This document shows, piece by piece, positions 10,394 through 63,698 of a stretch of DNA of 64,000 nt. The translations under genes were made by a program, and so were the position numbers. Each line of letters begins with the position of its first letter. The stretch's first letter is position 1. Location of the stretch: positions 90,644,001-90,708,000 of the forward strand of contig OZ260662.1 in the NCBI GenBank assembly GCA_965285935.1. The letters run 5' to 3'. Source of the stretch: Ophelia neglecta (Eukaryota). Below the pieces are notes generated by a model. The model was not told the DNA's origin and searched no databases. It saw only the letters and a list, made by a program, of their open reading frames with translations.

Positions 10394-10478
10394 ATGTCTG
10401 ACAAAGTTCGGATTATCTTCGTTTTTCTACTGCTGGCCACACTAGGATTCTTCCACACTTCACTAGCTGCCATGCATG
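10394..10478 (+). CDS. Gene 1 exon 1, signal peptide MSDKVRIIFVFLLLATLGFFHTSLAAMH
   Basis: AAAATG start context; basic n-region, hydrophobic h-region and SLA c-region; donor G|GTATGT in phase 1 matches the phase-1 acceptor at 26000 (G+AG=Glu). Confidence 0.75.
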
Positions 10479-13400
10479 GTATGTTAAATTCTGTGTTCCC
10501 TTTTTCAATATGTCTTTTTCGTCGGAAAACAGGAAAAGGTGAGAATGATAAAAAAAAAGCAGGTACTTTGGCGATTCTACCTTATTGAGTATTGAGTAAT
10601 TTGAGGGATTTTGTCTATTTTACTCCGATTTTCAGGAAAATCAACGATTCGAACTAAACTCTTATCAGGACATTTGAAACGTGTCTTTTAAACAGACTGC
10701 GCTTGTCGATTTGAGGCAGACTGCACTAATGTTAGTGTAAATAACTTATGTAAATTATTAAAACAACCTGATCGCCCATCACAATAGTTGTTGACAAAGC
10801 CATATAATTTATACTCCCGTTATCACTCGTCTGGTCTCGGCCCTGGATCTTCGTTCTATGTTATTTGATGCTTTTAACTGTACAACCTGGATTGCTGCCA
10901 ATACGAGCTCGATGTAAATATTGACGTGTTTTAACCCGCCTATCGACCGAGCAGAATGAACCAGCATGACTGAGACTAGGAAACCAGCCTTTATTTAACT
11001 TTGCATAAAACTACTTTGTTGGGCAGACGATACAACACGACAGGTCGATGAAACTCTCGTGTAGAACCAGCGAGATTTAATGTGAGGTCTCATAGAGTAT
11101 CAAGTACTTTACAGCTACCAAAACAACGCTGCTACCGTACGCTGTACTTAGAGCAAGGCATCTTGCTTCTTTTTAATTTATTGAATGTGTTCATATAAGA
11201 CATAGAAAAACGTAGGCCATTTCTCCTCGGCACTTTGTAGGTTATATTAAAGGTCGGAATAACTGTTACGTGCATGTAAATTGACATTTGGTGACTTCAC
11301 ATGCTGCCTGAAGTCGTCTGGCTTTGATTTGAGACGCCATAAATTTGGAGTCGGCGACTTAACCTTTAGTCGTTCTCTGTGACGTAATCATTTCAAAGCT
11401 TCTAACATAACACGCAGACGTGTGTTTTGCGACATTTATCGTCGCAAAGCGATCAATATTTGTCCTAGTATTTCTAGAGATCTTTGAAGCGCGTGGATGT
11501 TATTCAATGCCTGCCTACCCCATCCTGAGCGCTGCCTTATGCTTGTCACGTTCTGGTATTTAGAAGATTCTTCTTGTTTCTCTCATCTCAGTCGGCAGCC
11601 GAGAGCTGGCCACGATATGGCGCCCTTTTATACACCTCACTGCCGACGCTAGCCGAGTGACTTAGAAATGGGCATCTGTTAACTTAATGACGTCTTCAGT
11701 TAAACGATGGCTTTCGACGTACAGACTTAAATATGATCAGTGATTCGCGGAGAATTTCCATCTACAACATATAAATACGTTTCGAAATAAGTTCCTCATT
11801 TAAACCGCTGAACGGACGCCATTCATCCACGATTATTTACATCAAGTGACAGCATGTGATAAAACTATGATGCCGAATCTACAATAAAAACTCGAAGATT
11901 ATACTGTTATTAGCTTAGGTAATTAGAATTATGTATTAGAAACACAAACCTTTTGAATATTATTTTACTAACGTCCAATCAATCACCAGCTGCCTTGGTT
12001 TAATTGCTGTCTAAAGTAGATTCGTTAAATTCCTGATCACTGGCTACATACTGTTAGCAGGTGTCCCGTGTGAGAAGGCAGACGTAATTCTCAATCGTCT
12101 GCGCACCCCGCAGATTAATAAACCATCCAGACCTTCCTAATTTGTCCAAGTCCCTTTCTACATCATTACAGACGGTATAACGACATCGGCAACGATGAAC
12201 TTCTGCTGCATTCGGCAATAAATCTGTCGGTAGATGTCTCTGTCTTATATTAATTGGCCACGTGAGAGGGGATCTTGACACTAGTCCGAAAAATTCCATC
12301 TCTGTAGTTTCTGAGTTAGGTTAATAAGACCAAATAGTGCTTTGGAGCCGATGATTTCTGGTTTACTAAGTACCCGCATGGAGAAGGCAAGGCCTGGGGC
12401 ACCTATGGACCGTTCTCTCTGGGATTCTTTTTACCCTGACCTGCTTGTCTTGGGTTTCATTCATACTTGCCCTGTGGGTACTCGATTAATGATTTCTGTG
12501 CCAGAACAATTGCTATTACAGGAAGACAGCTGAGCCAAATGGGCCAAGATGATTTGAGAGGAGAAAATTGTTTTCTAGGGAACCGCCATGCCGGAAGCTC
12601 TGACGGTAGTCTGCTCCTGTGGTATCTCAAGTGCTCTTGAAAACAACAACTGTTCTCATGTCCAGTTGTTACTTTCATCTGTTCATGTTATGTTATCATG
12701 TGTGTGTAGTTACAGACGCATGCCGTATTAGAAATATAGATATGTTATCAGTATGCCTAATTATAAAGTTTCACCAGAAAACAATCTAAGTAAAGACCCC
12801 GCATGCACTTCAAACAGAACATTTCTCTTTTACGAAGCCAATCAGAAATCAGCACAGGACACGCAACGAACTTGATACGCAAAACATGCAAACACTTTGT
12901 TATTCTGTCTTGTCCAACTGCACACTATCTGATAGAATGTGAAACGTCATCATTTATGTATGGTTTGAGTATAGACTACTCCCCTAGATGTCAGCCGGGC
13001 ATTAGTTATATGCGATAAGTTGATAAGTGAATATGCATTGATGTCCACTGTGTATGCCTAAGGCTTATGGAGCAATGTTCTCTAACAAAAGCCTGGTACG
13101 AAAGTGGGAGATGTCATTGAGGTCTTATCAAAATACACATTTCCATAGCTTCCATTCTAATAAGTAATCTAATGATAAATTTCCATCTGTCCATTGTTGA
13201 TTTTAGGAAACACGATTAGACCCACGTGACTCATAAGATCTTGGACTTCAATTCCCGAGTCTGTTATTGTGGTTGGTGCCCAATTGTTAGAAGTTTTAAC
13301 TGGCATCTCTAATGAAAAAAAATCATTAAAAACATTTCTTTCGCAGAACATTCGTCAAGTCGATTAGTGGAATTCTTTACAATTTGACTAGATTAATGAG

Positions 13401-16400
13401 CTATTAATAACTGGTATTGTACAATCTAATAGCGGCATCCTGATGAAAGCAGACGACGAGAAATTAAGCACCTGTTCCTCTGTTTGTTCAGTCAGCCGGC
13501 AAGTGAGTAACTATGGAAACCATTATTCTTGTGCCGGTTAGCGTGACACAATGCTCGCAACCATAAAAGATATATATCTAGCCAGTTGGAAATATTATGT
13601 GCTTTTTCAACAACTGATATCAGCGCTGTTCAAAGGGAAAAAATGTGTCGAACGCTTCCACTTGTGAGCATTGCTCGCCCGTTGGCAATTATAGCGGACA
13701 ACGAACATTTACAATTAGGGGATTTATCATAACAAACGGATTTCAAATAGCAGACGACAGTAGCCACTAGCTATTGACGGAGTCCGTCAGAGGAATTCTT
13801 TTTGGCAGAAAGTATGACAAATCACAAAACGAACTGCCCTAAAGGTTTGTCCAGACACAGATGCTATACAACAATGTTCGTCGTTCATAATTATATTTGA
13901 TGTACACATAACATTCATTGAACTCTTGCATCTTCCTTTTACCGAGTTTCATCATGCTACATATATACATGTATGCTTGTACAGCATGCTATATAGATGC
14001 ATGTAGTGGGGAAGCCAAGCCCAACGCTGCTCGCGCTTGTCATGATTTGCCTTGCGAGTCCCAACGTTGGGACTATATATATATATTTAATATACGATAT
14101 ATAATTGTTCTATGCTTTTAACGTTTAACCACATTATTACTGGCAAATGATATTAGACTGCTGGTCTTATTTGCTCCGACCAGCCCCTAGGCAGGTAGGA
14201 TTAGGGCCGTCATCTATATAAGCTCGGTCCGTACGGCCGGGCGCCATTGTGCCCGGCCCCGGGCTGAAGTGCATAGCCATTGTTCTCCAGACAGCCTCAG
14301 GGGGCCAAAAAATATTACTTCGACGGGGGTGAGATGAATTCATCACAGTCCATTGCCCGCAAAGCGGCAAAACGGAAGTAGAATCCCGCTCTAGTCAGAG
14401 AGACGCTACTGTTATAATATACGGAGCATCATAAATTGAACGCTGCACAACCGCGTTAAAAAATCTTTGCCGAGGATAGACACTATAGTGTAGACATAGG
14501 GGATCACTCATTGTCTTTCTTATCGAGAAGCAGTCGAGGTGACAAATTTGAATTCGCCCTTACGCAGTTCGTTAACGCGCGACTTTCAATACTGGCATAA
14601 GCTACATGTATATGCAGTGAATATGTGAATAACTATTTAGTTTGCTACCTTTCTTAGGGCGATGAGGCTTCAAATATTGTACCATATTATGATCCAAAAT
14701 GGACCCTGGAAGCGGAGCTGTCTGATAAATACATTGAGTGACCCTTCCCCCCAGATCCGTGTACTCTAATTGAAAATATTCAAGGCTGAATTTTAGTCAT
14801 GAAACAACATTATCCCATCTTTGCCCCCCCCCCCCTTTCCCCGCCACAACCCCCTTGTAACTAAGACCGTGTTTTTGCATTAGATAACTAACAAGAAGGC
14901 TGTGAAAGTTATCAACCTCTGACCCTCTGCAATCAATACCTAACAGGAACGGAATGACCTAAAAGGTTACACATTGATAATATAGAATATCGATCAAGCT
15001 TTGTTCTTAATTATGATAATAATTATGAAAACTGTAGCTACAATTACCAGAAAGAGCACTGAACATCATTATGTTACATGACACCGATTTTAGAAGAATA
15101 TAAAGTGTGGCAAAATGTACAGTTTTCTCAACTGTACTGTTCCTAGTATCACTGCCTGGTCTTTTTTTAACAACACTGTTTTATCGGGGCTAGCAGAAGA
15201 CAGCTTGATTCCATTTGAATCCAGTCATTGAACGAACGAACATGAAATTCGCGCTCAAACAAGGACTGGGAAGATACGATAAGGAAACAGGAAAGCCTCT
15301 CCTCCCAGAAGTCAAACTGCCACTGCTACAACACCAACAAATAACAAGGCAACTGGTTTATGTCAACAGAACGGCGCATTCAAAAATTGATTGCGACTTT
15401 TCAGTTGTGTCATTAATTGGATACCATATAATGGAGGGATCCGCGCGACACATGACCCAAACCATAAACCTGTAATTCTATCGCATTTATACTAATAGCA
15501 GTTTAATATAAAAGGCACCATGTGCAAATAGTTGGCGGGTATAACAATTGTCCAAGATGTGGATCAAATTCGTATGATTTCTGGTCGGGTTTATGTCATT
15601 GTCTGATGGGATGTATTGATCAGCATGATGAGAGTTATTATTAAATAGTTATTATAAATTTTCACACACCAGGGCTGCAAATGACAGGGATATCGCACTC
15701 AATGACCAGAATTTATGTACTTATTATATATGTATCCGATAGTTTAAGTTTATCATATTTAACTTATAGGTACACAAAAATAACTATATAAGGGTAAAAC
15801 TGCCTGGTGCAAGTATTTAATTTTATGAGATGCATCTGTGGGATGGAAATTTGGGACAATTTTTTGTTAAAAAAGTATAATTACTATCGTTGAATTCCGT
15901 TTGTGACACGTTGGGACCATTGTACTAATTACATATTTAGATCCTTCATCTTGGTGAAACCTGAGTCAAATTTGAATTGCCATTGGTTCTTCTTCAGATT
16001 GTCTTGTAGTATTTGAAATAAACGTAAACGGGTCTAGTAAGTGGAACAAGTAAGTGGAACGAGACACTAAATGTGTAAACATTAACCTCGATCAATGCCA
16101 ATCAGTATTTTACCTCCATTCGAGGGTCAGCTATGTGATGCTTGAAATCGTGACTGCAAACTATATATTTCTCGGTGGTTCTTAAATCGAATAAGATGCA
16201 ACATAGTTTAACCGACAATTGTATTGTGTGACATTTACCCTTTTAGTTCAAAGTCACGGCGAGGCGTTAGACAATCAGCGTCCTGTTCTACTCAAATCAG
16301 CTGCCCAATATCAAATACCGTTTAATATCTTCTCTTTTAGAGCGAATCAACTCCAAATTTTACCGATGCTTCACCCGTTCAGTGATATCTTATTGCAATG

Positions 16401-19400
16401 TTATTTTTCTTGTCACGTGGTTCCTGTCTTTTTGTTTCTATGCGTGCTAGTTAATATATTAACTTGGAAAGCATTTGTCCGATTTTGATCAAATGTCGTA
16501 TAGATTTAGCTTTGAGCCAGCCCTCGTGATGACCAAAGCATCAATTTGTACGATTTTGAAAATATGTGGGATAGATTTAGTTTGACACCACTCTCTTATG
16601 ATGATTGAATTAAATATACATGAAAGACCACCCCTAATTCGCTTTCATATTTTTTGTTTTTACCATAGTGATGAAGACGAAATCGATTACATGAAGGCCG
16701 AGCAGAACTTAGCTTCGGCACCTGTACATCAGTCTGTAACAAATGGAAAAATTATTGTAAACGTTCTTTGGCATTCATTATGTTCTAATCATTAAATATC
16801 AAAATTTAAACTATTGTCATCTGATTAATATATTAATTGATTTATACATGCAGTGTACATCATTACAACAAAACCATTCTATCATCACTCTATAACCGGA
16901 AAAAAGAGGATACGATCCAAATACTACTTAATCTTTCCATAATGATCGAATCTCACTCCTTCTGAGACACATAGCATTGCTAACTAGACATTCATCCAGA
17001 AGAAGGTGAATAAATAGATGGCCGTGTCGTTAATCTCCGGAATAAAACAGACCGGCGAGCTCAATGATGCTGAAAACATTGCGGATTTTGTGTAGTCAGT
17101 TTTCGTTCAATCCATTATGCTCTCCGAGCCACACGCTCATCTACCGGGTATACCTATATGATGGATGGTGTCTCCAGGACGATCAATGGTACAGGCGACC
17201 CTTCCCCATCTGTCTTGCGGGTAGACTAGCAATAAGCTAAAGCGACCGTTACCGCTCTATCCTCAACATGCTTTCCGCGATGAACAGCATGGAGGTCAGC
17301 AAGTATGAGCAATAAGAAGATCTGATGTAGAAAATGTCTTCTTGGCGTAAGTAACTGACCTACTTAATAAATGTGCGGTCAGAATTAAGTTGCATTGATG
17401 AGAGTGCAGGTTTAAAAGAGTTTGTGCAGGTTTAGTGTATTCTACTGACAACAGCTTAACAAACAAAAGATACGATAACGATTCAATGGGAGTGCTGGTT
17501 TATTGTTCATTTACCGAGAACATGGTAAAGATAAAATCAAAAAGCACATTGCAAATGTAACATTTTCTTAGAATAATTGCCCGCTTTTAGTGCGAATGAT
17601 TTTGTCCTAGGGATGGTTGTTTCTCTGTCATTGCTTCAATAGATTTTCGGCTAATCTTTGCTCCTCTTTTGCTGAAATGAAACTTGGCTTGTGGAAAAAA
17701 GGATTTAAATGTAAAACCAGTTTCAGTGGCGGATTTAGGGGGGGGGGGGAGGGCAGGGGGCCCGCCCCTTTGCCAAAAAGTGGGCCCAGACAAGGGCCTA
17801 TTTCCGGACCTAGGAAAGGTGGTTTCAGAGGGTTGGTAACGGGGACAATCCAGACATTGGCCTTGTCAACACTGGAAAATTTGCCCCCCCCCCCTTCCTG
17901 AAATCCTGGGTTCGCCACTGAGTTTTATAAGAAGGATAAATTAATTATCTTTGGTTTCCTGTGTCTACCGCCACGTTCACCGGGAGATTCGCCCCGGCGG
18001 CAAGCCACTCATTTTGGCCATCTGAGACCTATAAGAATGACTCATTTCTCCCTATACAAGGCACAAAACTCTCAATATGGCAGGTGCATATTAATTTGAA
18101 AGTTAAGCAATATACTAGTACTTCGTAATAAGTACGTCCAGACGAACTGTGTTTATCTCGGGGGATTCCCGACAGTGTGCATTAATGTTAGCCCAACATC
18201 ATCGGCATACTGAGTGATATCACTGTCTAAAAAGATGTAGACTCCTACCACTCGTGCAATGCTCTATTTCCGTGAGAGAAGCCCGGACACGCATGCGCGC
18301 CCTTAATTTGGCGGAGGAAGGGGTAGTTCTCCGAGGTGTCTAAAAACGAGGTGGTTTGAGCCCAAATAGGATTTTGTAAAAGTGGGTAATTTTGTGCCGA
18401 GGAATTACATGATGTATTTAAGGGAATGGACCGGACCATGTATCCACCGAATCCAAATTAGGTACTGCTAATGACATGCAGTCGGACAACTCTTTTATAA
18501 AAATGGTCGCCAACATTTTATTGATATTAATACCCTATTTATTTGCATACTATAAGCATATCAAGTCTTTTACTACCAGTATATACTTCTAAATTGTCTT
18601 ATTTTTCGCAACGGAAGTTGTACTTTTTTGTACTTAATGCTCCTAGATTTGCCGCACAAAAAGGACGTTAAATAATTTATTTTCTCCTTGAATGGGATTT
18701 TTCCCCAACTCCTTACGAGGCATATGAGCCAGTTGAATATCTCATCGTGGCTTGTAAGCTAAAGGGATAAACAGAAACAGTGTACGTGGATTTATTCCTT
18801 GTTTTCCAGGCGGAGGGGGGGGGGGGTCAGTTTAATGTGTGAGACAATGGCATCCATCGGAGAGCAGACTTTGTATCTAGGCATTCTTAACTAACATAAT
18901 TTACACTTTGGTTTATATACTCTTGAATGCATCAACCTTGCAATTGAGTATAGCCATTATTGTTTTCTTAGCAATTCCTCAGTGTCGTGTCACAAGTGTC
19001 TCATATCAAATTTATTTATTGTTTTAGCCATGAACACGTGCTTTTTTGAATAAAAATGAAACAAAAGTCGAACGGCAACATCTAATAAAAGCAAATTTTT
19101 TCCAAATTATCCACTGAATATAGATTATATATTCATTTGATTGAGACATGACATTAAAGAACGATCTCAAACTTCTTATGACGTAACCGCCTCATTTAAA
19201 AAGCTTATATCAAATATATTAGGCCTATTCTATAGTAACAGCAGATTATTCTATTTTAATTTTGATATCTAAATTGCGATATTGAACACAAAAAAACCCA
19301 CCGATGTGTATCATTTGAGAACCAATATTGAAATCACCTGCAAGAATGAAATCTCTGATGGTTTCGAGCAATAAAATGAGTGTCCTGAACAGGACTAGTG

Positions 19401-25400: not shown

Positions 25401-28400
25401 GGGCGCAGAGCAAATGTAGTAATATGTCTTTTATAAAAATAATACACATAACCTTGTTTGGGGCTACAGCAAATATATAAACCAAATTATTTTCGCGGCA
25501 TCAGCTTTTTACGCAATGGACAGCATTTAATAATTGTACGTGTCATTTTCCTTGGTATTCACGAAAATCGCGAACATAAAATGCGCGGGAAATGTCCTGT
25601 AATTTGGGTATTTACTCTTGGAATATCAGCCAAGTGTACTAAGGTATGGAAAGAGGGCCTTGTAGAGTTCTATAGCCTATGTGCCCTCATAACTTCATCA
25701 CATTTCTAAGTCTTCACGCCCCTATTACCTGAGTTGCCCTCCTCATGATTTAGAGCCCCTGAGTCCGCTGTTTGTTGATAATTTAGTGTAAAGAGGTTTC
25801 GTCACTCGACATAATATTTAGGCTATAATCTTTAACCCTTTACACAGATAAAGAATAATGTGGTAATTGTTTAGTTTGTGTGAAATCTCTCCTTCCCTGC
25901 CAAACTCAATCCCTCTGCCATAGGAGTTCCATGCTGAATTATATGTTGTAAAACTATCCATGTAAACGTATGTCGTTATTTGAGGAGTTTCTGTTTCAGA
26001 GTTACGTGAGTATTGCGAGGGGGAGACATTCCGAGCTCGCTGCGCCTATGACGAGGTGATCCTGATGCAGCGCGCCATCTACGGGCGGATGAGGCTCGGC
26101 CGCTGTGTCAAGGTCGACATGGGCTACATCGGCTGTAGTAACGAGGTGCTGGACCTGGCCGACAACCGCTGCTCAGGGCGTCGAGAATGTGAGATCAAGG
26201 TACCGGACAACGTGTTCGAGGAAACCCAGCCCTGTTTGGAACTGAAGTCATATCTAGAGGCCAGCTTCACCTGCATTAAAGGTATAATGTGGAAAAAACA
26301 AACTATTAAATCATATTGATGACTCATCCTTGGTATATAATATTACACTTATAATAAACCATCGAAATTGGTTTTCATTTGTTTACAATGTAAACAAGTT
26401 ATTGTTCAATGAGATATATCCCCCCCCCCCTCGACGCCCATTCCCCACCGGCTCGAAAGGTTAACCAACCAGCCTGACATTTCAAGGAAGAGGATATTAA
26501 GTTGTTTAAACTGATTCTTATTTAGCCGGCAGTTATAGTAGGTTAAATAGCAGTTTGATTTATATATGGAAACCTATCTGCATTTCATGTTGAGAAAGTC
26601 CTAACGTGTGACTCACGAAGGTTGTCACTGGGAATTAACAAACGCCCTGCTTCAAAAAGCGTCTGTCGGATTGGGCTTAATGCGAGAAGACTGGCTGTTC
26701 TAAGTCTTCTCCGCTCCATGTGGCCCCAGCAGATAAGGGCTTTCTTCCTGTCAAACTCCAAGGCCGCTTTTGCACATTGATAATTGCCTTGAACCTGTCG
26801 ATGTAAGGTGCCATTTAATACAGTGCCTTCATGTCAAATCAGATTTGATTCAGTATCAAAGAAGAGAAGGGCGGAGAATAAAAAAATCATTAGATTCGGC
26901 CTGCAAAGTAAAGCTTTGCCAAAATAAAGCGTTGGTGAAACTCATATCCTTTTATATTTTAACCGTATACTGCGGGAAAAGGTAAGCTAGAAGGCCCGTC
27001 TAGTAAGAAGCTACAGATCTTTCGCACTAATATTTCATTTCCTGCCGACTTCTAACGTTAGTTCTTCAACAGTATATCTCCCGGGTCCAAATGCCATTTA
27101 AGAAAGATGTCTTGTCATAAGCAATACAACAGTAAGGTGGTCTTTATGAAATCTGGGAATAATATAGTCATATTATACGGGTCTCTGACGTAACATGCCC
27201 ACGGCCATTTGCTAAAATGACAAGAATATATATTGCATGTTAACTCGATAGGGTGTGAAGTAATCTAACATTACAGTATAATATCACCTGCCTAATCTCG
27301 TTGCATATATTTCCCAGTCCGACATGCTTTGCTTCTCCGCAATAAAACAACAAAAAACAACAACATTTCCATTCCTGCGGCTGATGTATGAGTTCTATTC
27401 GTATCTATGAAAAGTCTGCACGTTTGTGCAGACGAGTACAAGTAGTACGAGTATAGACTCTTACCCGCTCAAAGGTCTACAACTATATAAATATTTGACT
27501 ACACTGTTAACAGGCGGTATCCAAAGAGATCATTATAATCGTTTAATGTATGTCAAATAAAGCCAATTGCTTTAAATAAAGGCAATTAACTAGCGCCTGT
27601 TTTTCGTATTTCTAAGAAATCCTATGTTCTACTGCTATTCATCTAAAACTTTTCTTTTAATTGTGCAATGGTATATGCCGTTGTCTGTACACAATTAAAA
27701 ATCACAAAATTCATAATTTCTGAATGAGCTGGTGTGTTTTAGTTCTTCCAGTTGATAGTGACGTGTGCAGACGCTCCAAATTCCTCAAGGTCAACGCGCA
27801 GCAAGGTTACATCGCCAGCGTCACTGCCCAGGAGACCTGGTGCGGAGGCAGCGACACCCCGTGGTTAATAGAGGCACTCCCCGGCCAGCGAATAAACATT
27901 ACTCTGTTAGATTTTGGTGTTCAAAGGAGAAACTCGGAGAATTTTCCTCAATATAGCTCGTCCTTTGACTCCATAGAAGTATGTCAGAAGTATGCTGTGA
28001 TTAAAGAGCAGACGCGCAATACAGTAGTATGCGGCGGCAGGCACCGATATCACCACGAGTACATCTCCAATAGCAATGTGCTGGAGATTCAAATCGAGAA
28101 CAAGCTTACAAATCCTCACTTCTTCTTATTGAAATACGAAGGTGAGGCTAACTTTATATCTTGCTTTAGTTTCTCATACTAGCTTTCTTTATTGTAATTG
28201 GCAGCTCCTGGTTTTTGTCAAAAAAAAACCACTGAAACTGTAGTAATAATTATGTTGTCACCGATTTTCATGTACTTTCATGGATTCCACTATGCAAATG
28301 TGTAAGAAGCAATATAATTATCTCATCCGATTAGAATTTCTTTTCCTCCTGAAGTGATTGGTTGCCCTGACCCGGAAGTGTCAGCAGCGATGTCGTTTGA

Positions 28401-29673
28401 ACGACAGAACAACGAGATTACATTACGCTGCAAAGGAGGGGAAGAGAGTTGGAAACTACAATGTACTGGAACTGTCTGGCAAGGAAATATGGGCAACTGT
28501 TCTCAATGTATGCACATATGTAAAATTAAATTAATGAAATAAAATGCTAATAGCCTACACAGCCAAGCAACTTGTTGAATATGGCTAAATGGGGTAGGCT
28601 AAATATAGCAGTTTGTAGAGAAAAAAATAACGGTTATTTAGTTATTTCATGTTTGTGCCATCGATCATAGGAAGTGTATCATACTTGTTGTTTTTTTCTA
28701 TCCATTTCCAATCTGTTTGTTCTCTTTTTGCAGATCTGACCATGGTCAGTAGTGAAAGAAGAATGGGAAAAGGCGGCCTTACACGTCGTAAGAATGTTTT
28801 TATTTAAATTATGACCAGATCAATATATTTATAGAATGGTGTTGAACCAAATGTAAGCTCCGTTCTATTCGATCTTAAATCGTGCCATGCATGTCCAGAG
28901 TATTCAGCACTGTACATACGATATTGAAGGCTAATATTTTTTTTCTGAATAAGATTAATAATAGTATTTTAAGACTGAGAATAAAAGTGTGTCACGTGTT
29001 TGCCTTCTTTCCAGCCTTAGTAATTACCACTGTGTGCGGTATTGCCTTCATAGTCGGTGTGATAGTATTACTACTTGGTATCATGTTGTTCAGAAGGTAA
29101 GTAGTATTATCTGCTAAACAAACATGTGGATTGGTGTCCTCTTTGAAGAAGTATTTAAGGTTATATTGCTATCGTAATAAATCTAGTCACCTGTGGCCCA
29201 TACTTCTCCGCTTTACCGTCCAGACCTGCCGACTGTAGCGTGCACGTTTAAGCTAAAGTGGGTAGAGGTAAATTGCGGTTTTTTATATTTATGATCATAT
29301 TACCAGATACCGTCGATACGGCGACGAGGTACCGCCGGTTTCCCCTAAAAGCACGGAGGAAAGCGAGGTCCACGACGAGGAGGTGTACCTCAAGCCGTCA
29401 AACGGTACCGAGGCCGGCACCTACCACAAGTCTAACCACCTCATCCAGCGTGAGGGCACTTACTCCCGGCCGGAGGCGCAGTACCAGAAACCAGAGGGAC
29501 CGTATCACAAACCAGAGAGCGATTATCAAAGACCTGCTGGACACTATCAGAAAACCGAGGGAAAGTATCAAAAGGCTAATAGTCTGCAGGAGAGTGTCAA
29601 TCAGATCGGGGATAAAGGCAAGAATGAATACACGCACATCTGGGAGATGCCCCTACCCACACCAGGAGAGTAG
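10394..29673 (+). CDS. Gene 1 (7 coding exons, 473 aa): type I membrane receptor, signal peptide + SUEL-type lectin + CUB-like + Sushi-like + TM + Tyr-rich cytoplasmic tail
   Basis: Exons of 85+282+399+153+54+82+367 nt = 1422 nt join into one frame ending at TAG 29671-29673. All introns are GT-AG with matching phases (1,1,1,1,1,2). The exon 1 link across a 15.5-kb intron is inferred from phase and signal peptide. Confidence 0.85.
17724..17920. mobile_element. MITE family A copy 2
   Basis: CAGTGGCGGATTTAGG...CCTGGGTTCGCCACTG terminal inverted repeats, subterminal G/C runs, AGTTT duplicated on both sides. Confidence 0.9.
26000..26281 (+). CDS. Gene 1 exon 2, SUEL/Gal_lectin (rhamnose-binding-lectin-type) domain
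   Basis: ttctgtttcag acceptor, G|GTATAA donor. LREYCEGETFRARCAYDEVILMQRAIYGRMRLGRC...RCSGRRECEI...QPCLELKSYLEASFTCIK has 8 Cys and the YGR and PC..YLE..C pattern of SUEL domains. GC-rich third codon positions. Confidence 0.93.
27743..28141 (+). CDS. Gene 1 exon 3, CUB-like domain
   Basis: tgttttag acceptor, G|GTGAGG donor. GYIAS..PWLIEALPGQRINITLLDF...CQKYAVI...VCGG...SNSNVLEI...FLLKYE matches CUB beta-strand motifs and aligns with gene 2 exons. Confidence 0.9.
28355..28507 (+). CDS. Gene 1 exon 4, Sushi/CCP-like module
   Basis: ttttcctcctgaag acceptor, T|GTATGC donor. VIGCPDP...LRCKGG...LQCTGTVWQGNMGNCSQ has 4 Cys with C..P and C-x4-W-x6-C spacing as in CCP modules. Confidence 0.82.
28734..28787 (+). 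CDS. Gene 1 exon 5, 54-nt stalk (YLTMVSSERRMGKGGLTR)
   Basis: Long pyrimidine tract ending tttttgcag, donor C|GTAAGA; phase 1-1 preserves the frame. Confidence 0.75.
29015..29096 (+). CDS. Gene 1 exon 6, transmembrane helix (PLVITTVCGIAFIVGVIVLLLGIMLFRR)
   Basis: ttctttccag acceptor, AG|GTAAGT donor (phase 2); about 25 hydrophobic residues followed by a basic stop-transfer RRYRR. Confidence 0.88.
29307..29673 (+). CDS. Gene 1 exon 7, cytoplasmic tail with tandem Tyr heptads and terminal YTHIWEMPLPTPGE
   Basis: attaccag acceptor, phase 2 (AG+A=Arg), in frame with ORF 29383..29673; ends at TAG. Confidence 0.87.
29452..29577 (+). repeat. Coding 21-bp repeat x6 (Tyr heptads) in gene 1 tail
   Basis: EGTYSRP EAQYQKP EGPYHKP ESDYQRP AGHYQKT EGKYQKA. 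Confidence 0.9.
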
Positions 29674-30212
29674 CTAGAATAATGACAGGACTTCTTTGAC
29701 TGACACCAAAGGTATTATATCAGCGAGGCAGGCTTCCTTCTGATTTGTCTTTTAACGTTTCTTTCTTTGTCATATAGCCATGAGACTATTAAAGTCACCT
29801 TAGATAGGAGAGCAAATGTTATCATTAAAGTTTTTTAAAAATTATGAGGCTGGCCTCAGTTAATAGAATCCTATAAAGATCACACTATTCTCACAATATT
29901 GTATTTAAATGTGTTTTGCAACAAATTAAATTAAATCATATCATACAAAGAAAAATTCAGAAAAAGCAATTCTGTGACGTCATCTGTCCAGAAGATTAGT
30001 GTTATCTGAAAATAATTCTGTTGCGTTTTTTTTTACATTTATCTGACAAATTTGCGCAATATAATTAACTGGCTATTCAAAACATTCATTCAGGTTCTGT
30101 CACCTTATTGAGATATTTCATCAAGTAAGATGTATATTATTTTGTCGACAGTTCAACCCTACATCTATCTAATAAGCGTATCATTCATGTAGGCAGCAGA
30201 TTTTACTTGAAA

Positions 30213-30282
30213 TGTCTCTGTCTCTGTCTCTCTCTTTCTCTCTCTCTCTCACACACCCACACACACTCTGTCTCTGTCTCCT
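30213..30282. repeat. Compound (TCTCTG)/(CT)n/(CA)n microsatellite
   Basis: Directly visible. Confidence 0.9.
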
Positions 30283-30308
30283 CCCGAATTGTTTCAATGA
30301 TACATGTA

Positions 30309-30447
30309 NNNNNNNNNNNNNNNNNNNNNNNNNNNNNNNNNNNNNNNNNNNNNNNNNNNNNNNNNNNNNNNNNNNNNNNNNNNNNNNNNNNNNNNNNNNN
30401 NNNNNNNNNNNNNNNNNNNNNNNNNNNNNNNNNNNNNNNNNNNNNNN
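30309..30447. other. Assembly gap
   Basis: Run of N. Confidence 1.
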
Positions 30448-35044: not shown

Positions 35045-35339
35045 AAGTGGCGGATTAAGGGGGGGGGCAGGGGGCCCGCTCCCTCCCCCCCCCTTTTTGC
35101 AAAAAAAGGGCCTGAACCAGGGCCTATTTCTGGACAGTGGCGGATTAAGGGGGCCCAGAGGTCCCGCCTCCCCCCTTTTACCAAAAAGTGGGCCAAACCA
35201 GGGCCTATTTCCGGACCCACGCAAGGTGGTTTCAGAGGGTTGGTAAGGGGGCAATCCAGACATTTGCCTCGGCAGCCTTAGAAAATTTGCCCCCCCCCCC
35301 AACCCCCACCCCCTTCCTGAAATCTTGGATCCGCCACTG
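35045..35339. mobile_element. MITE family A copy 3 with duplicated left arm
   Basis: (A)AGTGGCGGATTAAGG at 35045 and CAGTGGCGGATTAAGG again at 35135; right TIR GGATCCGCCACTG; TCTAC duplicated on both sides. Confidence 0.88.
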
Positions 35340-40484: not shown

Positions 40485-40712
40485 NNNNNNNNNNNNNNNN
40501 NNNNNNNNNNNNNNNNNNNNNNNNNNNNNNNNNNNNNNNNNNNNNNNNNNNNNNNNNNNNNNNNNNNNNNNNNNNNNNNNNNNNNNNNNNNNNNNNNNNN
40601 NNNNNNNNNNNNNNNNNNNNNNNNNNNNNNNNNNNNNNNNNNNNNNNNNNNNNNNNNNNNNNNNNNNNNNNNNNNNNNNNNNNNNNNNNNNNNNNNNNNN
40701 NNNNNNNNNNNN
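40485..40712. other. Assembly gap
   Basis: Run of N. Confidence 1.
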
Positions 40713-48204: not shown

Positions 48205-48214
48205 TATATATGCA

Positions 48215-52982: not shown

Positions 52983-53514
52983 GCCTCAGGCACATTTGCC
53001 CAGTTGGCCGGCCGAATATGAGGTAGGCTATCGTGCGATTTCCCTAATACCCGGGCGCCGGTGACTTTTCTAGACATTTTCACGACGTTTCTAACATATG
53101 AAGGAAAGCGATCACGGCCCCTAAATTATTTTGCCCAATAAAGTCGAAAGGCCATCGCACGGGAGCTATAGGCTGGCGGTTCCGCTCAGGTTTTTGAAGT
53201 CGCAAGGGCGGCAGGATACTGTTAGGAACCGTGCGGTCCAGGTATTAAATATAACATCGCACGATGACTGTAAGGTGTCTCCGGGGAGCGCAGGGTGACA
53301 TTAAGACGTCCTCCCAGGGCCCGTAAACACCCCGGCGGTGGACCCTCGGTGTTATTCTTTTTAAAAAACCGGCCGGTCATCGAGAAAATATAACTTCGCG
53401 TTAAAAGCCACCGGCGACATTGGCCGATACCACCGCACTTCACCGACGAAATGTGCCTGTGACCGCACAATACCATAGGTGCCCGCCAGAACTCACCGAG
53501 GCATATGGGACAGT
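52983..53514. mobile_element. Possible degenerate non-autonomous DNA transposon (PIF/Harbinger-like)
   Basis: GC/CpG-rich block in AT-rich context with imperfect inverted ends (CACATTTGCCC ... GGCATATGGGAC) and repeated ATCGCACG/ACCGCAC motifs. Family assignment is from resemblance only. Confidence 0.35.
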
Positions 53515-56500: not shown

Positions 56501-58729
56501 TGTTGCGGGCGATATGGATGAAAAACCAGTCGACTTGACACTACAAAGAAACTCTGCCTCTCAAAGGCTGATGTACTTGAGTACACACGTGTAATTAGAG
56601 ATTCCAGCTACCCGATACCCACCGGAGCAAAATCTGTCCTTCCGCCTCGAGGCACAATTCACCCGATACTGCCTCAAACTTATAAGACAATGGCATGATT
56701 TAAACGAGCTATTGTTTCCTTTTAGAGTGGATATTACAAGGAAAAACTTGAAAGTTGTTTTTGTTTGAAGCCTTATAGAATGAGATTAGAATTATGCCAC
56801 TAAGCGGATCAGCTGCGTGGCACAAAGGCAGACGACATGCTGTCGTCTTTTAGAGTTGGTGGTTTGTTGCTCTCGTCGTCTGCCCGCGCTTGCCTTAGAA
56901 CCCAGAGAACTGCTCACAATTACATTCACAGTACATTTGATCTTCTTTTGTGCAGTGAGATGAAGGAAAAGAAAACAATGACACACAATAACATATTTAT
57001 ATTTTTTCTTCTATTTCCCAAAGCATATACGAATACGTAAACATGTTTACCATGTATACATGAGGACTATTGTAAGCTATTGTATGTGATTTTGTCTAAA
57101 TGTGAACCAGTAAAAGTCTTTAACCATTGTATTTCTGAAAGTCACATGTCGGTGATTTTGTATCGCATATATTGAATGCAGCCAGGTGCAAACTATTAAT
57201 ATAGTAGGCAGATACTCATTTCCTAAAAGGCGAATCACGCTCAGAGGGAATATGCCCAAAAGAGCTTTATGCCGAGGCCCCAGGTCGATGGAAATACTGC
57301 AGTTTGGGTCATATTCCCGAGGGAACCATAATTCACCATGTTTCCTAAAATACGGCAGGCAGCAATTGTTTGATTACATACCCAGTATGTTTTTTTAGAG
57401 TCATAATATTAGCTGACTGATGTATCATCACTATTTAATGTGTTAGTTATGATGACATAAAAGTGTCAATTCTATGCTTATAGGCCTTGTTTGTTCTAAT
57501 GTAAGCATTTATAGTTTTCCAACTTTTAAAACAGGAGGATGTTCCCCTTGAATAATCATGAATACATTATTACAATAGGCCCCCTTCATTCAGAGGGTGA
57601 AAGGAATTGATATGATTTGATCGGCCGGGTCCGGGCTGACAGTCGTGTCTCCAAGCGGCTCTCCGGTGTTTTGACCGTGGTTATATACGGCCTAAGGCTG
57701 TGCATGGCTATACTGCGTGGCAACCTCGGTTTAGAGCAGGGGCCCTTCCGTAATATTTCAATATGTCGTCGGGTAGTAACAAATCTCCTTAGTGCGTGTT
57801 TTTCTTCATAATTGAGTGTTAAACTTCATAATTACAAAATGATACTTTATTTAAATAGCCAATCAGCAAATTTTAATCGCCAGGATTCACCAATTCAGTA
57901 TAAATCAACAAGTTAACAAACACGTGGTTGAAGCCTCCAATTAGTCCATGCTTCATAAAAGTTATCTTCAAAAACTCATGTTATTCAACATAGGAGGTGT
58001 GTCTTGACAGCGAGTGTGAGCGATATAAATAAACCAATAAACAAATCAGTGAGTGGTCACAGGATGGAGGTTTTGACACGTCGATATCGGCCTACCTCCA
58101 TCCAAATGAGTTGTAATAATCACTCAAATCACGCTTTATTTACTCCTGGTTGTATAACAAAAAGGGCATGTCTATATTCAAATGATTACGTTTTAGATCA
58201 TAAAACGATCGTAAGTGCCTATAGAGTACGTATGGATACGATATGACACACGCAATGCCTATTTATGGGTATACTACGTCATCGTGTCTTGGCGTCTTGT
58301 GTCTGTGCTGGTTATCCCACATGCCACTCGCAATTTGGAGGCAGTGATACTGGGGATGAGTTTTAATTTATTTCATTAGAAAACACGATTTATCATGATT
58401 TTCCACCTAGAGGGAGATCGCCTCGGCTGTGTGCATCTCTCAGACTTAATGCCATCAGCTTCGTAGCTCTCGTTCATGACGCATGAAGACTACCATCTAT
58501 TACAAGACGGCCTTGTTGCACGTCCACAAGACAAATGGCATTCCAATAACATGCTTATTGAATTTTTCCCCTGTACGACGCGCTTTATGTAACCGTTCAC
58601 ACCCCTGTCGGTAATAAGGACTAATGTCCCCGGTTAGTACGTGTTGAAAGGTAGCTGTCGTCCATCTAAAACCGGATATTGATTGAAGATCGCCAGGGGA
58701 TTACGCTAAAATCTCACCTTTCAACAGCA

Positions 58730-60110
58730 TTGCCGCCTGATTCATGTCTCATTGCCGTCTACCCATGATTCCTGTCTATATTGTCGTCTACTCATGATTA
58801 CTCTCCATATTACTGCCTACCCATGATTCCTGTCTTCATTGCCGTCTACCCATGATTCCTGTCTTCATTGCCACCTTCCAATGATTCGTGTCTTCATTGC
58901 TGTCTACCCATGATTCCTATCTTCATTGCCACCTTCCCATGATTCCTGTTGTCATTTCCGTCTACCCATGATTCCTGTCTTCATTGCCACCTTCCCATGA
59001 TTCGTGTCTTCATTGCTGTCTACCCATGATTCCTGTCTTCATTGCCACCTTCCCATGATTCCTGTTGTCATTTCCGTCTACCCATGATTCCTGTCTTCAT
59101 TGCCACCTTCCCTTGATTCGTGTCTTCATTGCTGTCTACCCATGATTCCTATCTTCATTGCCACCTTCCCATGATTCCTGTTGTCATTTCCGTCTACCCA
59201 TGATTCCTGTCTTCATTGCCACCTTCCCATGATTCGTGTCTTCATTGCTGTCTACCCATGATTCCGGTCTTCATTGCCGCCTGCCCATGATTCCGGCCTT
59301 CACTGCCGTCAATCCTTGATTCCTGTCTTCATTGCCGTCAATCCTTGATTCCTGTCTTCACTGCCGTCAATCATTGATTCCTGTCTTCATTGCCACCTTC
59401 CCATGCTTCCTGTTGTCATTTCCGCCTACCCATGATTCCTGTCTTTATTGCCGTCCTCTCATGATGCCTGTCTTCATTGCCACCTGCCCTTGATTCCTGT
59501 CTTCGTTGCCGCCTGCCCATGATTCCGGTCTTCATTGCCGCCTGCCCATGATTCCGGTCTTCACTGCCGTCAATCCTTGATTCCTGTCTTCATTGCCGTC
59601 AATCATTGATTCCTGTCTTCATTGCCACCTTCCCATGATTCGTGTCTTCATTGCTGTCTACCCATGATTCCGGTCTTCATTGCCGCCTGCCCATGATTCC
59701 GGTCTACACTGCCGTCAATCCTTGATTCCTGTCTTCATTGCCGTCAATCATTGATTCCTGTCTTCATTGCCACCTTCCCATGATTCGTGTCTTCATTGCT
59801 GTCTACCCATGATTCCGGTCTTCATTGCCGCCTGCCCATGATTCCGGCCTTCACTGCCGTCAATCCTTGATTCCTGTCTTCATTGCCGTCAATCATTGAT
59901 TCCTGTCTTCATTGCCACCTTCCCATGCTTCCTGTTGTCATTGCCGTCTACCCATGATTCCTGTCTTTATTGCCGTCCTCTCATGATGCCTGACTTCGTT
60001 GCGGCCTGCCTTTGATTCCGGTCTTCATTGCCGCCTGCCCTTGATTCCTGTCTTCATTACCGCCTGCTCATCATTCCTGTTTTCATAGTGTCTACTCGGT
60101 TCATGATTTC
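58730..60110. repeat. 29-bp minisatellite, about 46-47 units, with higher-order periodicity
   Basis: Unit CCATGATTCCTGTCTTCATTGCCGTCTAC (period 29; CCCATG at 58820 and 58849); diagnostic variants recur at 116, 145 and 522 bp. Confidence 0.97.
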
Positions 60111-60689
60111 TGTCTCCCGGTTTGCCTCCAAATACAATCAGTACATTCCCCGATGGCGGAATGTGGCCGATTTGAAATCTGCGATATGGTGGAGAACAGG
60201 TTTTATTCAATCCAATTTAGATTTCATAAGGATTTATTGACTTCACACAACATATACGTGCACAACAGTTAATATTCTTTTCAATAAAACAGAATAACTT
60301 ATTTGAAAAACAACTTAACAATCAAGCAACATGTGTAAAGACAAGGAGAACAGGACACATATATGTCCTCTAAATAGAGAAACTCAACAACAGATTGCGC
60401 AGGTGCAGCTACTGACAGGATGCTTACAATATAAACAACAATGTCAACATAACAGAACAGCGCCATATCAGCCCTCGTACAAGAGTCACTTAGAAAGTTC
60501 CAGCAAAATCACACCATATAAATTATGTGAATAAATTTCCCTCTCGGCCCCCATTATGTAGTAATAAAATGCTCAGGCAGTGAAAAAAGATTATAGATAC
60601 TCTTTGATAATTGTCTTTAATCTGTAGAGGCTATAAAAAAGGAACAATAATAGCATAGATTTGAATTTTTTTTAAACACCTGTATATCT

Positions 60690-60820
60690 GACAGCTCTGT
60701 ATGAATACTAATTTTAACTTTGCCTTAGATAAGCCTACGCGTAAGTTAATCTTCTGTCTAATATTGTAAGAATGGATGTCTGAATTGCATATAAACTTCT
60801 CAGGTAGCACTTCTAGGTTG
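60690..60820 (-). mobile_element. LINE (CR1/L2-clade-like) ORF2 C-terminal remnant
   Basis: Translates as LEVLPEKFICNSDIHSYNIRQKINLRV, resembling the F..N..IH.YNTR motif after the RT domain in these LINEs. A possible 3'UTR/tail follows toward about 60200 (AATAAA on the minus strand). Confidence 0.55.
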
Positions 60821-61575: not shown

Positions 61576-61857
61576 GCGGAATCTATTGCGAGTTCGAAAC
61601 ATTTCAAGCACAGTGCCCGGATGATCACGTGATAGTCATGAAGCGAGCCCTCTTTGGCCGAATGGAGTTAGGACGCTGTGTTGTTGCTGACCTTGGTTAT
61701 GTCGGCTGCTCCTCAAATGTCCTTGACCTTGCCGACCAACGCTGCTCCGGTAAACGACAGTGCAGCATCGCAATGCCGGACAAGAAATTTTCTGCACGGC
61801 AGCCCTGTTTAACCGAACTGAAATCCTATTTGGAGGCTTCTTATTTATGTCAAAAAG
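61576..61857 (+). CDS. Gene 2 SUEL-type lectin exon
   Basis: tggtttag acceptor, G|GTGAAA donor, 282 nt like gene 1 exon 2. GIYCEFETFQAQC...ALFGRMELGRC...QPCLTELKSYLEASYLCQK; 59/91 identical to gene 1 by manual alignment; all 8 Cys conserved. Confidence 0.93.
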
Positions 61858-63698
61858 GTGAAATTAAAACTCTTTTATTGATCGGACCTAATCAATTTTA
61901 CGATGATTCATCATGTAATGTTATCGCGGGCAGATAATTTGGACTGTTTAGTTTACCTAAAATGTCCGCTTTTTTGATTGGACAATGAGGTCAGATTTGA
62001 CCACTTTAATCGGACTCAGGTGTGCAATAATACAGCTTTTTACCTATAAAATGATGACGTTATTTCAGTGACGGCCGTGGAGTCTCGGACGTGTCGGCGG
62101 TGTGATTTTGTTAAGGTGACCAGTGACGAAGGTTACATAGCTAGTGTCCTCACCGAGGAGAGTGGCTGTGGCTCCCCAGACTGCCCTTGGCTCGTACAGG
62201 TAAAATATTATTTAAACGCAAGGAACTTGTTAAATTAAAAACACTGACTTATATATGTTACATATATCTGTAGTTGATATGTTATACTTACATGTCTATT
62301 TAATACGCATATAGTATATCGGTGGCCATGACTTTTAAAATTGTGTAATTATTATTTAAATGTTTGGCGGGTCCTAACTACGTATACTGTGAAGGCATAT
62401 TTTCAAAAATTACCGTGTTGGATAAAGTTCGAGCTATGTTAAGGTTGCCTAGCTGGGGTTTCTTTTAAGCTCAAAATCTCTCCATGTTCCAAATACCTAA
62501 TCGTTTAAACAGAGCTGCTAGATGTTTCACTGGCAATTTTGAATTCATTTGGTACCAATGCATGATCTGCTGCGAACACTGTTTGAATGATCCTCCAGTT
62601 GTTCAATGAGTATCTGTGTCATGTACTTAATAATGTTCACCTTTAAATGCCGGCACGGACACAACACGAATATGTTCGCTAACGACTGCATCAATATAAG
62701 GATCATCATTATTCAACTATTACATGAGGGGTTTACAAAACCTGATTGGGAAAAGGCGCTTTTTTCTTGGCGAGACTTTGAGATAATCGTTTCTTATCCA
62801 ATACCTCGCCTTAATTATGGAATAAACCCCAAGGGAAATTTGTTAGAATGGATCTTCATCTGCATTAAAGAAATTTCTCAAGTCTTGTCTTCTGCAAGTC
62901 ATTTTGTACTACTGGCATTATTTAATGGCGTGGTGCATTTGTTTAGTCAAATTTTCTTAATTGTGATATAGCAGCATCGTGTTTCAAAGTGTGCTTACGA
63001 ACGAGAATAGTATATGCCAATGTATATGTCGAGGGTTTGTTATCCTGTGCTGTTCTGAATTCATCCGTCAAGGAAGGTTGTAAAATTACAGGAGAATTGA
63101 GTATTTCATATATCAATGTAATCCAAAAATTATATGGGCTTTCGACTTTTTGTTGCTGGAAAGTATTCATGCATACATTCTTTATATTTTCAATCAGGTA
63201 CACCCAGGACAGAGGATAAACTTAACGCTGGTAAATTTTGGTTGGAGCCAGGATATGGCGTCTCCGCAAATAGCAAATGGAGAGACAGAAGGGTGCCGGG
63301 TGTATGGTACAATAAAGGTAGATATCATAAAACAAGTATCTGTTAGTATGTAATCGATATACTACTTCACATTGTAGACGGACTATTATAAAGTAGTATC
63401 TGTAAAGTAAGAGCTTTAAGTGAATGCGACATCGACATTTTCTTAATTTTATTATAGGTCACTCATTCATGGAGACTTCCCAGTGCCTGCATTCTTTGAG
63501 ATTATTGGTACTTAATCATAATTTGAATAATTGTCTTTATGATCTTTCAGGAAGAGACTGCTATTCGTAGTAAAACCGTGTGTAGTGGTAAAGCTCGGGA
63601 GCAGCATGTGTACACATCGCTCACGAACACCGTGGAGCTTCGAATTGTAGGCCAAGGTGCTAACGAGGAGTCTCCACATTTCCTATTCAGATATGAAG
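61576..63698 (+). CDS. Gene 2 (partial), paralogue of gene 1: SUEL-type lectin + CUB-like; first exon not located, 3' exons not found in window
   Basis: Four exons (61576-61857, 62069-62199, 63198-63317, 63551-63698) splice in frame with GT-AG sites and align to gene 1 exons 2-3. Confidence 0.88.
62069..62199 (+). CDS. Gene 2 CUB-like exon a (not in ORF track)
   Basis: tatttcag acceptor, CAG|GTAAAA donor. VTAVESRTCRRCDFVKVTSDEGYIASVLTEESGCGSPDCPWLVQ aligns to gene 1 VLPVDSDVCRRSKFLKVNAQQGYIASVTAQETWCGGSDTPWLIE. Confidence 0.9.
63198..63317 (+). CDS. Gene 2 CUB-like exon b
   Basis: ttttcaatcag acceptor, AAG|GTAGAT donor, phase 0-0. VHPGQRINLTLVNFG...CRVYGTIK aligns to ALPGQRINITLLDFG...CQKYAVIK. 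Confidence 0.9.
63551..63698 (+). CDS. Gene 2 CUB-like exon c
   Basis: atctttcag acceptor, G|GTACAA donor. EETAIRSKTVCSGKAREQHVYTSLTNTVELRI...HFLFRYE aligns to EQTRNTVVCGGRHRYHHEYISNSNVLEIQI...FFLLKYE, with the same terminal phase-1 intron position. Confidence 0.88.

Follow-up and report, generated by a model that had tools for sequence, protein, structure and literature searches.

Two adjoining genes of Ophelia neglecta assigned to an annelid family of SUEL-CUB-CCP single-pass receptors

The lectin fold named SUEL or RBL (rhamnose-binding lectin) is known from SUL-I (5H4S), CSL3 (2ZX0) and CSL2, which are secreted tandem-repeat lectins with a DPC-x-G-T-Y-K-Y-L-E loop, and from the N-terminus of membrane receptors, namely the latrophilins (ADGRL1-3 and LAT-1) and EVA-1/EVA1C. 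CUB modules placed directly before CCP modules are in turn found in C1r, C1s and MASP. In lophotrochozoans no role has been established for SUEL-type lectins (review PMC8878817). Here we describe a window of 64,000 nucleotides of the Ophelia neglecta genome (C2:90644001-90708000 of a 762-Mb chromosome-scale genome; coordinates without a chromosome are positions in this window) that carries two plus-strand genes, gene 1 and gene 2, whose SUEL exons start at 26000 and 61576, 35.6 kb apart. Both very probably belong to an annelid family of SUEL-CUB-CCP single-pass receptors, which is recorded in databases although its function has not been worked out, and which is apparently annelid-wide, old and very large. 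No paper on this family, on its function or on the names given to its members in GenBank was found in the literature.

The two genes share with SUL-I, CSL3 and CSL2 the SUEL fold, the eight cysteines, the YGR motif and the ...PC....YLE...C end, but here a single SUEL domain stands on a membrane receptor and its loop reads QPC-L-E-L-K-S-Y-L-E, without the binding Lys and Gly. Latrophilins and EVA-1/EVA1C are likewise membrane receptors with an N-terminal SUEL/RBL domain, and in receptor-type RBL domains the residues that bind sugar are often missing, for which reason such domains have been argued to bind proteins (PMC2430599). However, the RBL domain of latrophilins is followed by olfactomedin, HormR, GAIN and seven transmembrane (TM) segments, whereas here it is followed by CUB, CCP and one TM helix, and no Pfam match to olfactomedin, HormR or GAIN/GPS domains was obtained in the gene exons or in 10 full-length relatives. 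EVA-1/EVA1C carry two SUEL domains and no CUB or CCP, in contrast to the one SUEL exon per gene, then CUB and CCP, found here. The CUB-CCP succession is that of C1s CUB2-CCP1, and structures 4LOS/4LOT match both the CUB and the CCP models, but C1r, C1s and MASP are secreted CUB-EGF-CUB-CCP-CCP proteins with a serine protease, so that only CUB-CCP is shared; here a TM helix is present, and neither an EGF nor a protease domain gave a Pfam match in the gene exons or the ten relatives. Unlike SEZ6/CSMD, neuropilin, NETO, DCBLD and CDCP1, these genes have one CUB and one CCP under a SUEL head, a different tail, and no protease, EGF, LDLa, FA58C or MAM domain.

Receptors of the annelids Arenicola marina and Capitella teleta show the succession SUEL, CUB, short CCP, TM and tail of the two genes and their 8+4+4 cysteine framework, and the signal peptide at their N-terminus has a candidate counterpart in gene 1. 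They match significantly by sequence and carry related tail motifs (NDYYRTWQ / HIWETPLP, YFELD). Among them are the A. marina entries 'Gal-binding and CUB domains containing receptor' 15, 12 and 11 (UCK81578, UCK81579 and UCK81580) and several unnamed C. teleta proteins ('SUEL-type lectin domain-containing'; ELT96203, ELU09978, ELU05650). A previous reading of this DNA from its letters, hereafter the original prediction, had held that the domain order matches no named family, and these records contradict it. Their names are database labels, 'Gal-binding' reflecting the Pfam label only. The original prediction had also considered that one-to-one orthology to a characterised gene of this architecture might emerge; these relatives are uncharacterised, 38-57% identical per exon, and not orthologues of gene 1 or gene 2.

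Gene 1 spans 10394-29673 on the plus strand. Its model, of about 470 aa, has seven exons, each of them bounded by AG/GT and in phase with its neighbours:

10394..10478, plus strand: candidate exon 1, start codon and signal peptide (MSDKVR, hydrophobic core, SLA/A); ends in phase 1 with donor ATG/GTATGT
26000..26281, plus strand: exon 2, SUEL/RBL lectin-fold domain with 8 Cys (Pfam PF02140); phase 1 at both ends
27752..28141, plus strand: exon 3, divergent CUB in one exon; phase 1 at both ends
28355..28507, plus strand: exon 4, short CCP/sushi module of about 47 aa (GCPDP...C...W.L.C....W.G..NC); phase 1 at both ends
28734..28787, plus strand: exon 4b, 54-nt stalk (..LTMVSSERRMGKGGLTR..) between CCP and TM; phase 1 at both ends
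29015..29096, plus strand: exon 5, TM helix (LVITTVCGIAFIVGVIVLLLGIMLF) followed by RR, read from the sequence; ends in phase 2
29307..29673, plus strand: exon 6, cytoplasmic tail and stop

Each ectodomain module of gene 1 occupies one phase 1-1 exon, as is classical for extracellular modules that have been shuffled. The stalk exon was found by alignment with L037, a contig from another sample (ERR14113986), in which the block 28731-28803 is conserved with its AG acceptor, GTAAG donor and length, and TM exons were detected by tblastn in many paralogues. Candidate exon 1 sits 15.5 kb 5' of exon 2; in a scan for an ATG, a hydrophobic core and a phase-1 donor it had the best donor among the high-scoring candidates, a weaker alternative lying at 25231-25312, and it is a plausible candidate for the signal-peptide exon. 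No upstream element common to the putative 5' region of gene 1 and 35 other family loci was found.

The original prediction had given gene 1 the order signal peptide, SUEL, CUB, Sushi, TM and Tyr-rich tail (473 aa), and from SUEL to the tail this order was recovered from the in-phase exons, from Pfam for SUEL and from predicted structures for CUB and CCP. The exons of both genes were used singly in sequence searches, not as joined protein models. PF02140 was matched with E 8.4e-11 in gene 1 and 5.7e-10 in gene 2, both passing the curated Pfam cut-off, and gene 1 SUEL also matched the solved domains of SUL-I (E 3e-20), CSL3 and latrophilin RBL. The CUB exon of gene 1 was weak in Pfam (E 0.009, below the cut-off; the relative P0065 is above it), the CCP exon gave no Pfam match, no Sushi match was obtained in ten relatives scanned, and neither the CUB nor the CCP exon had a significant match by sequence among solved structures. 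The AlphaFold2 model of the CUB exon, built on an alignment of 89 family sequences, had a predicted local distance difference test score (pLDDT) of 90.9; its top Foldseek and VIA matches were almost all CUB domains (TSG-6 with E 1.5e-3), and it was superimposed on MASP-1 CUB2 with Z 9.0 and a root-mean-square deviation (rmsd) of 3.5 A over 102 residues. For the CCP exon (pLDDT 88.6) an unfiltered search of 48,161 chains, independent of Foldseek, returned 41 top rows that were nearly all CCP modules (CD55, MASP-2, SPICE, E-selectin, C1s, CD46, factor H, IL-15R alpha), aligned over all 50 residues at 2.1-2.5 A with Z from 5.2 to 4.0, CD55 being the best (Z 5.2, rmsd 2.2 A). The predicted CCP assignment rests on the consistency of this list and not on the score, since Z is modest, as expected for 50 residues. 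In addition, the pattern G-C-P-D-P...G-C...W-x-L-x-C....W-x-G...N-C is common to 30 paralogues, with four Cys and two Trp kept. The models thus confirm the CUB and sushi calls for gene 1. Where canonical CUBs have C-x-Y-D-Y the family consensus is C-x-x-Y-A, which hints that the Tyr/Glu/Asp/Asp calcium site (cbCUB) may have been lost.

Gene 2 was recognised by the following exons:

61576..61857, plus strand: SUEL exon (PF02140); phase 1 at both ends
62069..62199, plus strand: CUB exon a, matching residues 1-40 of gene 1 CUB by tblastn (50% identity); phase 1 in, 0 out
63198..63317, plus strand: CUB exon b, matching residues 43-84 of gene 1 CUB by tblastn; phase 0 at both ends
63551..63698, plus strand: CUB exon c, matching residues 80-129 of gene 1 CUB by tblastn; phase 0 in, 1 out

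Two additional phase-0 introns therefore split its CUB domain. Only lectin and CUB exons of gene 2 had been predicted within the window, and indeed its CCP, TM and tail exons were located 2.6-4.2 kb past the window end (contig L013). The scan for an ATG, a hydrophobic core and a phase-1 donor identified no signal-peptide exon for gene 2.

A duplicated, diverging family of single-pass receptors had been proposed, with the advice to look for more copies beyond the window, and its size proved far larger than that proposal. The CUB exon of gene 1 had 139 matches in the genome and the SUEL exon at least 150, all with E<=2.5e-14 (the 150 scored of 207 candidates). SUEL, CUB and CCP exons were colinear on the same strand in 33 of the 34 other loci examined, and members are present on at least three chromosomes. 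Match coordinates place an array of roughly 90 SUEL exons at C5:92.53-93.62 Mb. Each has a CUB-like exon downstream of it, within about 0.5-1 kb, whose match to gene 1 CUB covers residues 9-87 only; the array lies on the minus strand up to about 92.93 Mb and on the plus strand beyond, the blocks being mostly in opposite orientation. Elsewhere on C5 the family genes L020 and L021 (C5:104979300-105000300) are 11 kb apart. No search separated them by score or by identity, and this points either to a tandem duplication of very recent date or to a duplication in the assembly. Close to the window, L014 (C2:90604001-90614000) and L015 (C2:90567001-90577000; SUEL exon C2:90577038-90577316) are complete-looking minus-strand genes of the family, situated 34 and 67 kb 5' of the first exon of gene 1. 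Because they lie upstream on the minus strand, the local cluster comprises four genes in divergent orientation.

Outside this genome, a phmmer search of 1.84 billion representative proteins with the CUB exon of gene 1 gave 1361 matches at E<=1e-3. The ten longest of the 150 listed matches (356-651 aa) all carry SUEL, and nearly all the relatives examined in full show the SUEL-CUB-CCP-TM-tail order. The E values of the CUB exon were 1.5e-17 for P0041 (UCK81578), 4e-14 for P0106 (UCK81579) and about 1e-13 to 1e-15 for the Capitella proteins P0140 and P0071; the best exon identity to UCK81578 was 47-57%, that of the SUEL exon to P0041 being 47%. Four relatives lie on cDNA-like contigs, one of them (P0024) as an uninterrupted open reading frame (ORF) of 496 aa on a contig of 2554 nt, and therefore relatives are expressed as spliced mRNAs with the same domain order. 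Among ESM-Atlas clusters the nearest (score 0.98) consists of 106 proteins, every one from Annelida, and the next is a rotifer cluster (0.88); the SEZ6 and NETO clusters are the nearest neighbours without SUEL. A word-index protein search returned one match for the tail exon of gene 1, and with a full-length relative or a 9-sequence family alignment it returned the query alone, a result that says nothing on taxonomic range.

For identities, dN/dS and phylogeny the three CUB pieces of gene 2 were joined end to end, as were, for every paralogue, its three ectodomain segments. The original prediction had described two same-strand paralogues about 35 kb apart with about 65% lectin identity, and the measured SUEL identity of 64-66% agrees with it. 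Its reading of a locally duplicated pair is not borne out: identity is 42% in CUB and 31% in CCP, synonymous sites are saturated (pS ~0.75), and a quick maximum-likelihood tree groups gene 1 not with gene 2 but with a gene 48 Mb away, at C2:42.14 Mb (support 91 in the Shimodaira-Hasegawa-like approximate likelihood-ratio test, SH-aLRT). The paralogues of this genome interleave in the same tree with Arenicola and Capitella proteins, several clades having supports of 92-97, and therefore the subfamilies predate the split of these annelids. Genes 1 and 2 are ancient paralogues that happen to adjoin, neither sisters nor a recent tandem pair.

The comparison of dN and dS that had been recommended for the lectin and CUB surfaces was informative in one of two cases. 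Between genes 1 and 2 it says nothing because synonymous sites are saturated. Against L037, which aligns to the window only at 27741-28148, 28353-28510 and 28731-28803, that is, at exons 3, 4 and 4b of gene 1 with their splice sites, the introns not being alignable, it was informative. The CUB of gene 1 is 89% identical to this orthologue and at most 50% identical to every paralogue. The CUB exon has 81% nucleotide identity with omega 0.044, and over 196 codons dN is 0.072, dS 1.26 and omega 0.057. Gene 1 is under strong purifying selection, which argues against its decay and against arms-race turnover of this gene. The only close paralogue pair sampled, L024 and L025 (C2:71.63 and 71.20 Mb), had dN 0.08 and dS 0.61 over three ectodomain exons, which indicates that purifying selection acts on them likewise.

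Two features of the cytoplasmic tail of gene 1 were annotated:

29455..29580, plus strand: six 7-residue Tyr repeats in the translation (GTYSRPE AQYQKPE GPYHKPE SDYQRPA GHYQKTE GKYQKAN; four YxxP)
29623..29658, plus strand: tail motif 1, N-E-Y-T-H-I-W-E-M-P-L-P, followed in gene 1 by TPGE and the stop

Motif 1, whose family form is N-[ED]-Y-x-x-I-W-E-x-P-L-P, often with more prolines next, is also present in gene 2, L014, L015, L019, P0024, the Capitella protein P0071 and P0168. A second motif, [RQ]-Y-[FY]-x-L-[DE], lies near the C-terminus of 10 of the 11 tails examined, including those of gene 2, L014 and L015. Gene 1 lacks it: its stop follows motif 1 at a distance of four residues, and the sequence 3' of that stop retains no trace of motif 2. 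The Tyr heptads of gene 1 have no tandem repeat at the DNA level and are not found in the tails of gene 2, L014, L015 and L019. In a marine metagenome relative (P0168/L038) the acceptor of the tail exon is at the same position as in gene 1 and the first 30 residues agree; a related EGxYx[KR]x series is present, and the ending, KNEYTHIWEMPLPTPGE, is identical, with the stop one codon later than in gene 1. Because the same tail is conserved there, the short tail of gene 1 is a trait of its subfamily and not a recent truncation. In L012, L016, P0041 and P0103 motif 1 is replaced by N-x-Y-Y-R-T-W-[EQ]-[LM] and a third tail motif, E-H-I-Y-E-S-P-[KR], is shared, and this subfamily is conserved between this genome and Arenicola.

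The immunoreceptor tyrosine-based activation motif (ITAM) is YxxL/I-x(6-12)-YxxL/I, and the inhibitory one (ITIM) is [SIVL]-x-Y-x-x-[IVL]. Motifs 1 and 2 are about 60-100 residues apart, a distance outside ITAM spacing; motif 1 has Asn at position -2 and motif 2 has P, Q or S there, hence only some copies fit ITIM. Phosphotyrosine signalling through the predicted tail motifs is plausible.

Regarding the sugar site, nuclear magnetic resonance and mutagenesis of the mouse latrophilin-1 RBL domain have shown that rhamnose or galactose is held by Glu42 (after the first Cys), Tyr63, the backbone of Gly117 and Lys120 (the K of Y-K-Y-L-E), and that E42D, E42Q and K120R abolish binding; receptor-borne RBL domains without these residues were argued to bind non-carbohydrate ligands (PMC2430599). 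The corresponding residues were read from HMMER alignments to SUL-I, CSL3, CSL2 and LAT-1. The gene 1 loop Q-P-C-L-E-L-K-S-Y-L-E stands opposite D-P-C-x-G-x-Y-K-Y-L-E, so that Gly117 is replaced by Glu and Lys120 by Ser, and the same is true of gene 2. None of 23 paralogues has the loop-2 Lys, and the Gly117 position is Asp or Glu in all 23, while the YGR motif keeps its Tyr in 22 and its Arg in 23. Judged by these residues, canonical rhamnose/galactose binding by the SUEL domain of the family would be unlikely. Glycan recognition, the first of the functions put forward in the original prediction, is consequently doubtful: the Lys and Gly that it would need (PMC2430599) are absent from both genes and from the 23 paralogues checked.

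On the architecture, family membership, family size and selective constraint established above we base an explanation that is reasonably probable, namely that genes 1 and 2 are both intact and belong to an old, very large and apparently annelid-wide family of type I membrane receptors, in which the capture of a ligand would be relayed by the tail motifs. The mechanism itself is put forward tentatively: the SUEL-CUB-CCP head would capture the ligand mainly by protein-type contacts, and the Tyr/Pro motifs of the tail would relay the event. In such a mechanism the ectodomain would bind an evolutionarily stable ligand, and binding through protein-type contacts or a non-canonical sugar site would be likelier than through the classical rhamnose/galactose pocket, which is degenerate here. 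The tail would couple binding to the cell through motif 1, most members also using motif 2, and both motifs may act as phosphotyrosine/SH2-SH3 docking sites or as YxxPhi sorting signals. In the subfamily of gene 1, a tail that ends after motif 1 and bears six Tyr heptads, four of them YxxP, would suit the docking of adaptors at multiple sites.

Several observations weigh against this explanation. The Glu at position +1 of the first Cys, equivalent to Glu42, is kept in genes 1 and 2 and in 8 of the 23 paralogues in all, and most paralogues have a Lys or Arg one position earlier in loop 2 ([DE]-L-K-S-Y-L-E), for which reason a re-shaped sugar site in this loop is conceivable. The Tyr motifs of the tail may fit YxxPhi endocytic signals equally well as SH2/SH3 docking. 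Finally, splice logic, homology and the conservation of exons across species are the basis for exon 1 of gene 1 and for all the exon junctions; no RNA run with the locus was found, and the three runs that contain it look like DNA runs of one sample.

A different possibility is that the two genes encode classical lectin pattern-recognition receptors, which would bind galactose- or rhamnose-type glycans of microbes or cells, signal through phosphotyrosine and have expanded in an arms race. The clear SUEL fold, the Glu after the first Cys and the YGR Tyr retained by both genes are in agreement with such receptors, and so are the agglutination of bacteria by a bivalve SUEL lectin (PMC8878817) and the very large, tandemly arrayed family, similar to many invertebrate immune repertoires. 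However, K120R or E42Q alone is enough to suppress binding by latrophilin-1 RBL (PMC2430599), and the loop-2 Lys is missing, with Asp or Glu at the Gly117 equivalent, throughout the paralogues checked. The omega of gene 1, near 0.06, together with subfamilies common to Arenicola and Capitella, is also against fast arms-race turnover of gene 1, and the spacing of the tail motifs is not that of an ITAM. For these reasons we consider this possibility improbable.

Equally doubtful is that these proteins are endocytic or cargo receptors, in which a soluble ligand would be captured and two YxxPhi motifs (YTHI and YFxL) would drive AP-2-dependent internalisation instead of signalling. Both conserved tail motifs do fit YxxPhi, endocytic receptors with CUB domains exist, and cubilin was among the structural matches. 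Nevertheless, the conservation of motif 1 extends far past the four residues of YxxPhi, suggesting a more specific partner; the subfamily of gene 1 lacks motif 2 and has an added YxxP array; and cargo receptors would not usually come in more than 150 paralogues. Very unlikely, finally, is that either locus, or both, is an unexpressed or decaying copy (pseudogene), or that the gene models are artefacts of mis-assembly. The lack of any RNA run for the organism, of an exon 1 for gene 2 and of tail motif 2 in gene 1, and the two assembly gaps between the genes, could suggest it. Against it, every exon has an open frame, Cys and Trp are conserved and the splice phases agree; gene 1 evolves with a very low omega relative to an orthologue whose introns cannot be aligned; its short tail is kept to within one codon in a distant relative; and the gaps touch no exon.

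The two assembly gaps lie 3' of the gene 1 stop and 5' of the first exon recognised in gene 2, and neither is spanned by an exon or a reading frame:

30309..30447: assembly gap 1, 139 N, 636 nt past the gene 1 stop codon; outside all exon models
40485..40712: assembly gap 2, 228 N, between genes 1 and 2; outside all exon models

The adjacency of the two genes, their spacing and the possible position of an exon 1 of gene 2 depend on correct scaffolding across both N runs. Gap 1 is adjoined by a simple repeat of (CT)n type (30207-30308; ORFs SLSLSLSL / HTHTH), which probably accounts for the break in the assembly there. Three other features of the window were observed around the genes. A dispersed element is present in both orientations at 912-1196 (plus strand), 17617-17918 (both strands), 35021-35389 (both strands) and 50169-50395 (minus strand), one of its copies being inside the long first intron of gene 1; its ORFs read ...PGFQEGGGG.F..DKANVWIVPVTNPLKPP...GP..G...PPPP, and it is probably an interspersed repeat. 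A minisatellite of 29-bp period with more than 44 copies (63-92% identity) occupies about 58633-60200, 1.4 kb 5' of the gene 2 SUEL exon, its position matching that of a strong GC and AT skew (58-60 kb bin). At 53222-53710 (minus strand) an ORF of 162 aa that reads C-P-I-C...C-G-H has a weak match to a RING-type zinc finger (PF13445, E 0.008, below the cut-off); a TRIM-like gene or a mobile element may have left it there as a fragment.

If genes 1 and 2 are intact receptors as proposed, a further and speculative view, to which we give little weight, is that the family would constitute an annelid-specific recognition repertoire of more than 150 genes, serving cell-cell identity, chemosensation or self/non-self discrimination. 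A SUEL domain without its sugar pocket would then form with CUB and CCP a diversified protein-binding head, purifying selection would keep each paralogue for its own ligand, and the six EGxYx[KR]P-type repeats of the gene 1 subfamily would be a built-in phosphotyrosine docking platform of the Crk/Abl type. Genes 1 and 2 are ordinary members of the family, each with one local peculiarity: in gene 1 the tail is short and bears Tyr heptads, and in gene 2 two extra introns interrupt the CUB domain. The SUEL fold heads here a family which, for an annelid genome, may be one of the largest among receptors; distant annelids share it, and it is under purifying selection. Its degenerate sugar pocket and its sharply conserved Tyr/Pro tail motifs turn the label of 'lectin receptor' into testable questions, namely which ligands are bound by the ectodomains of the family and which adaptors read its tail.

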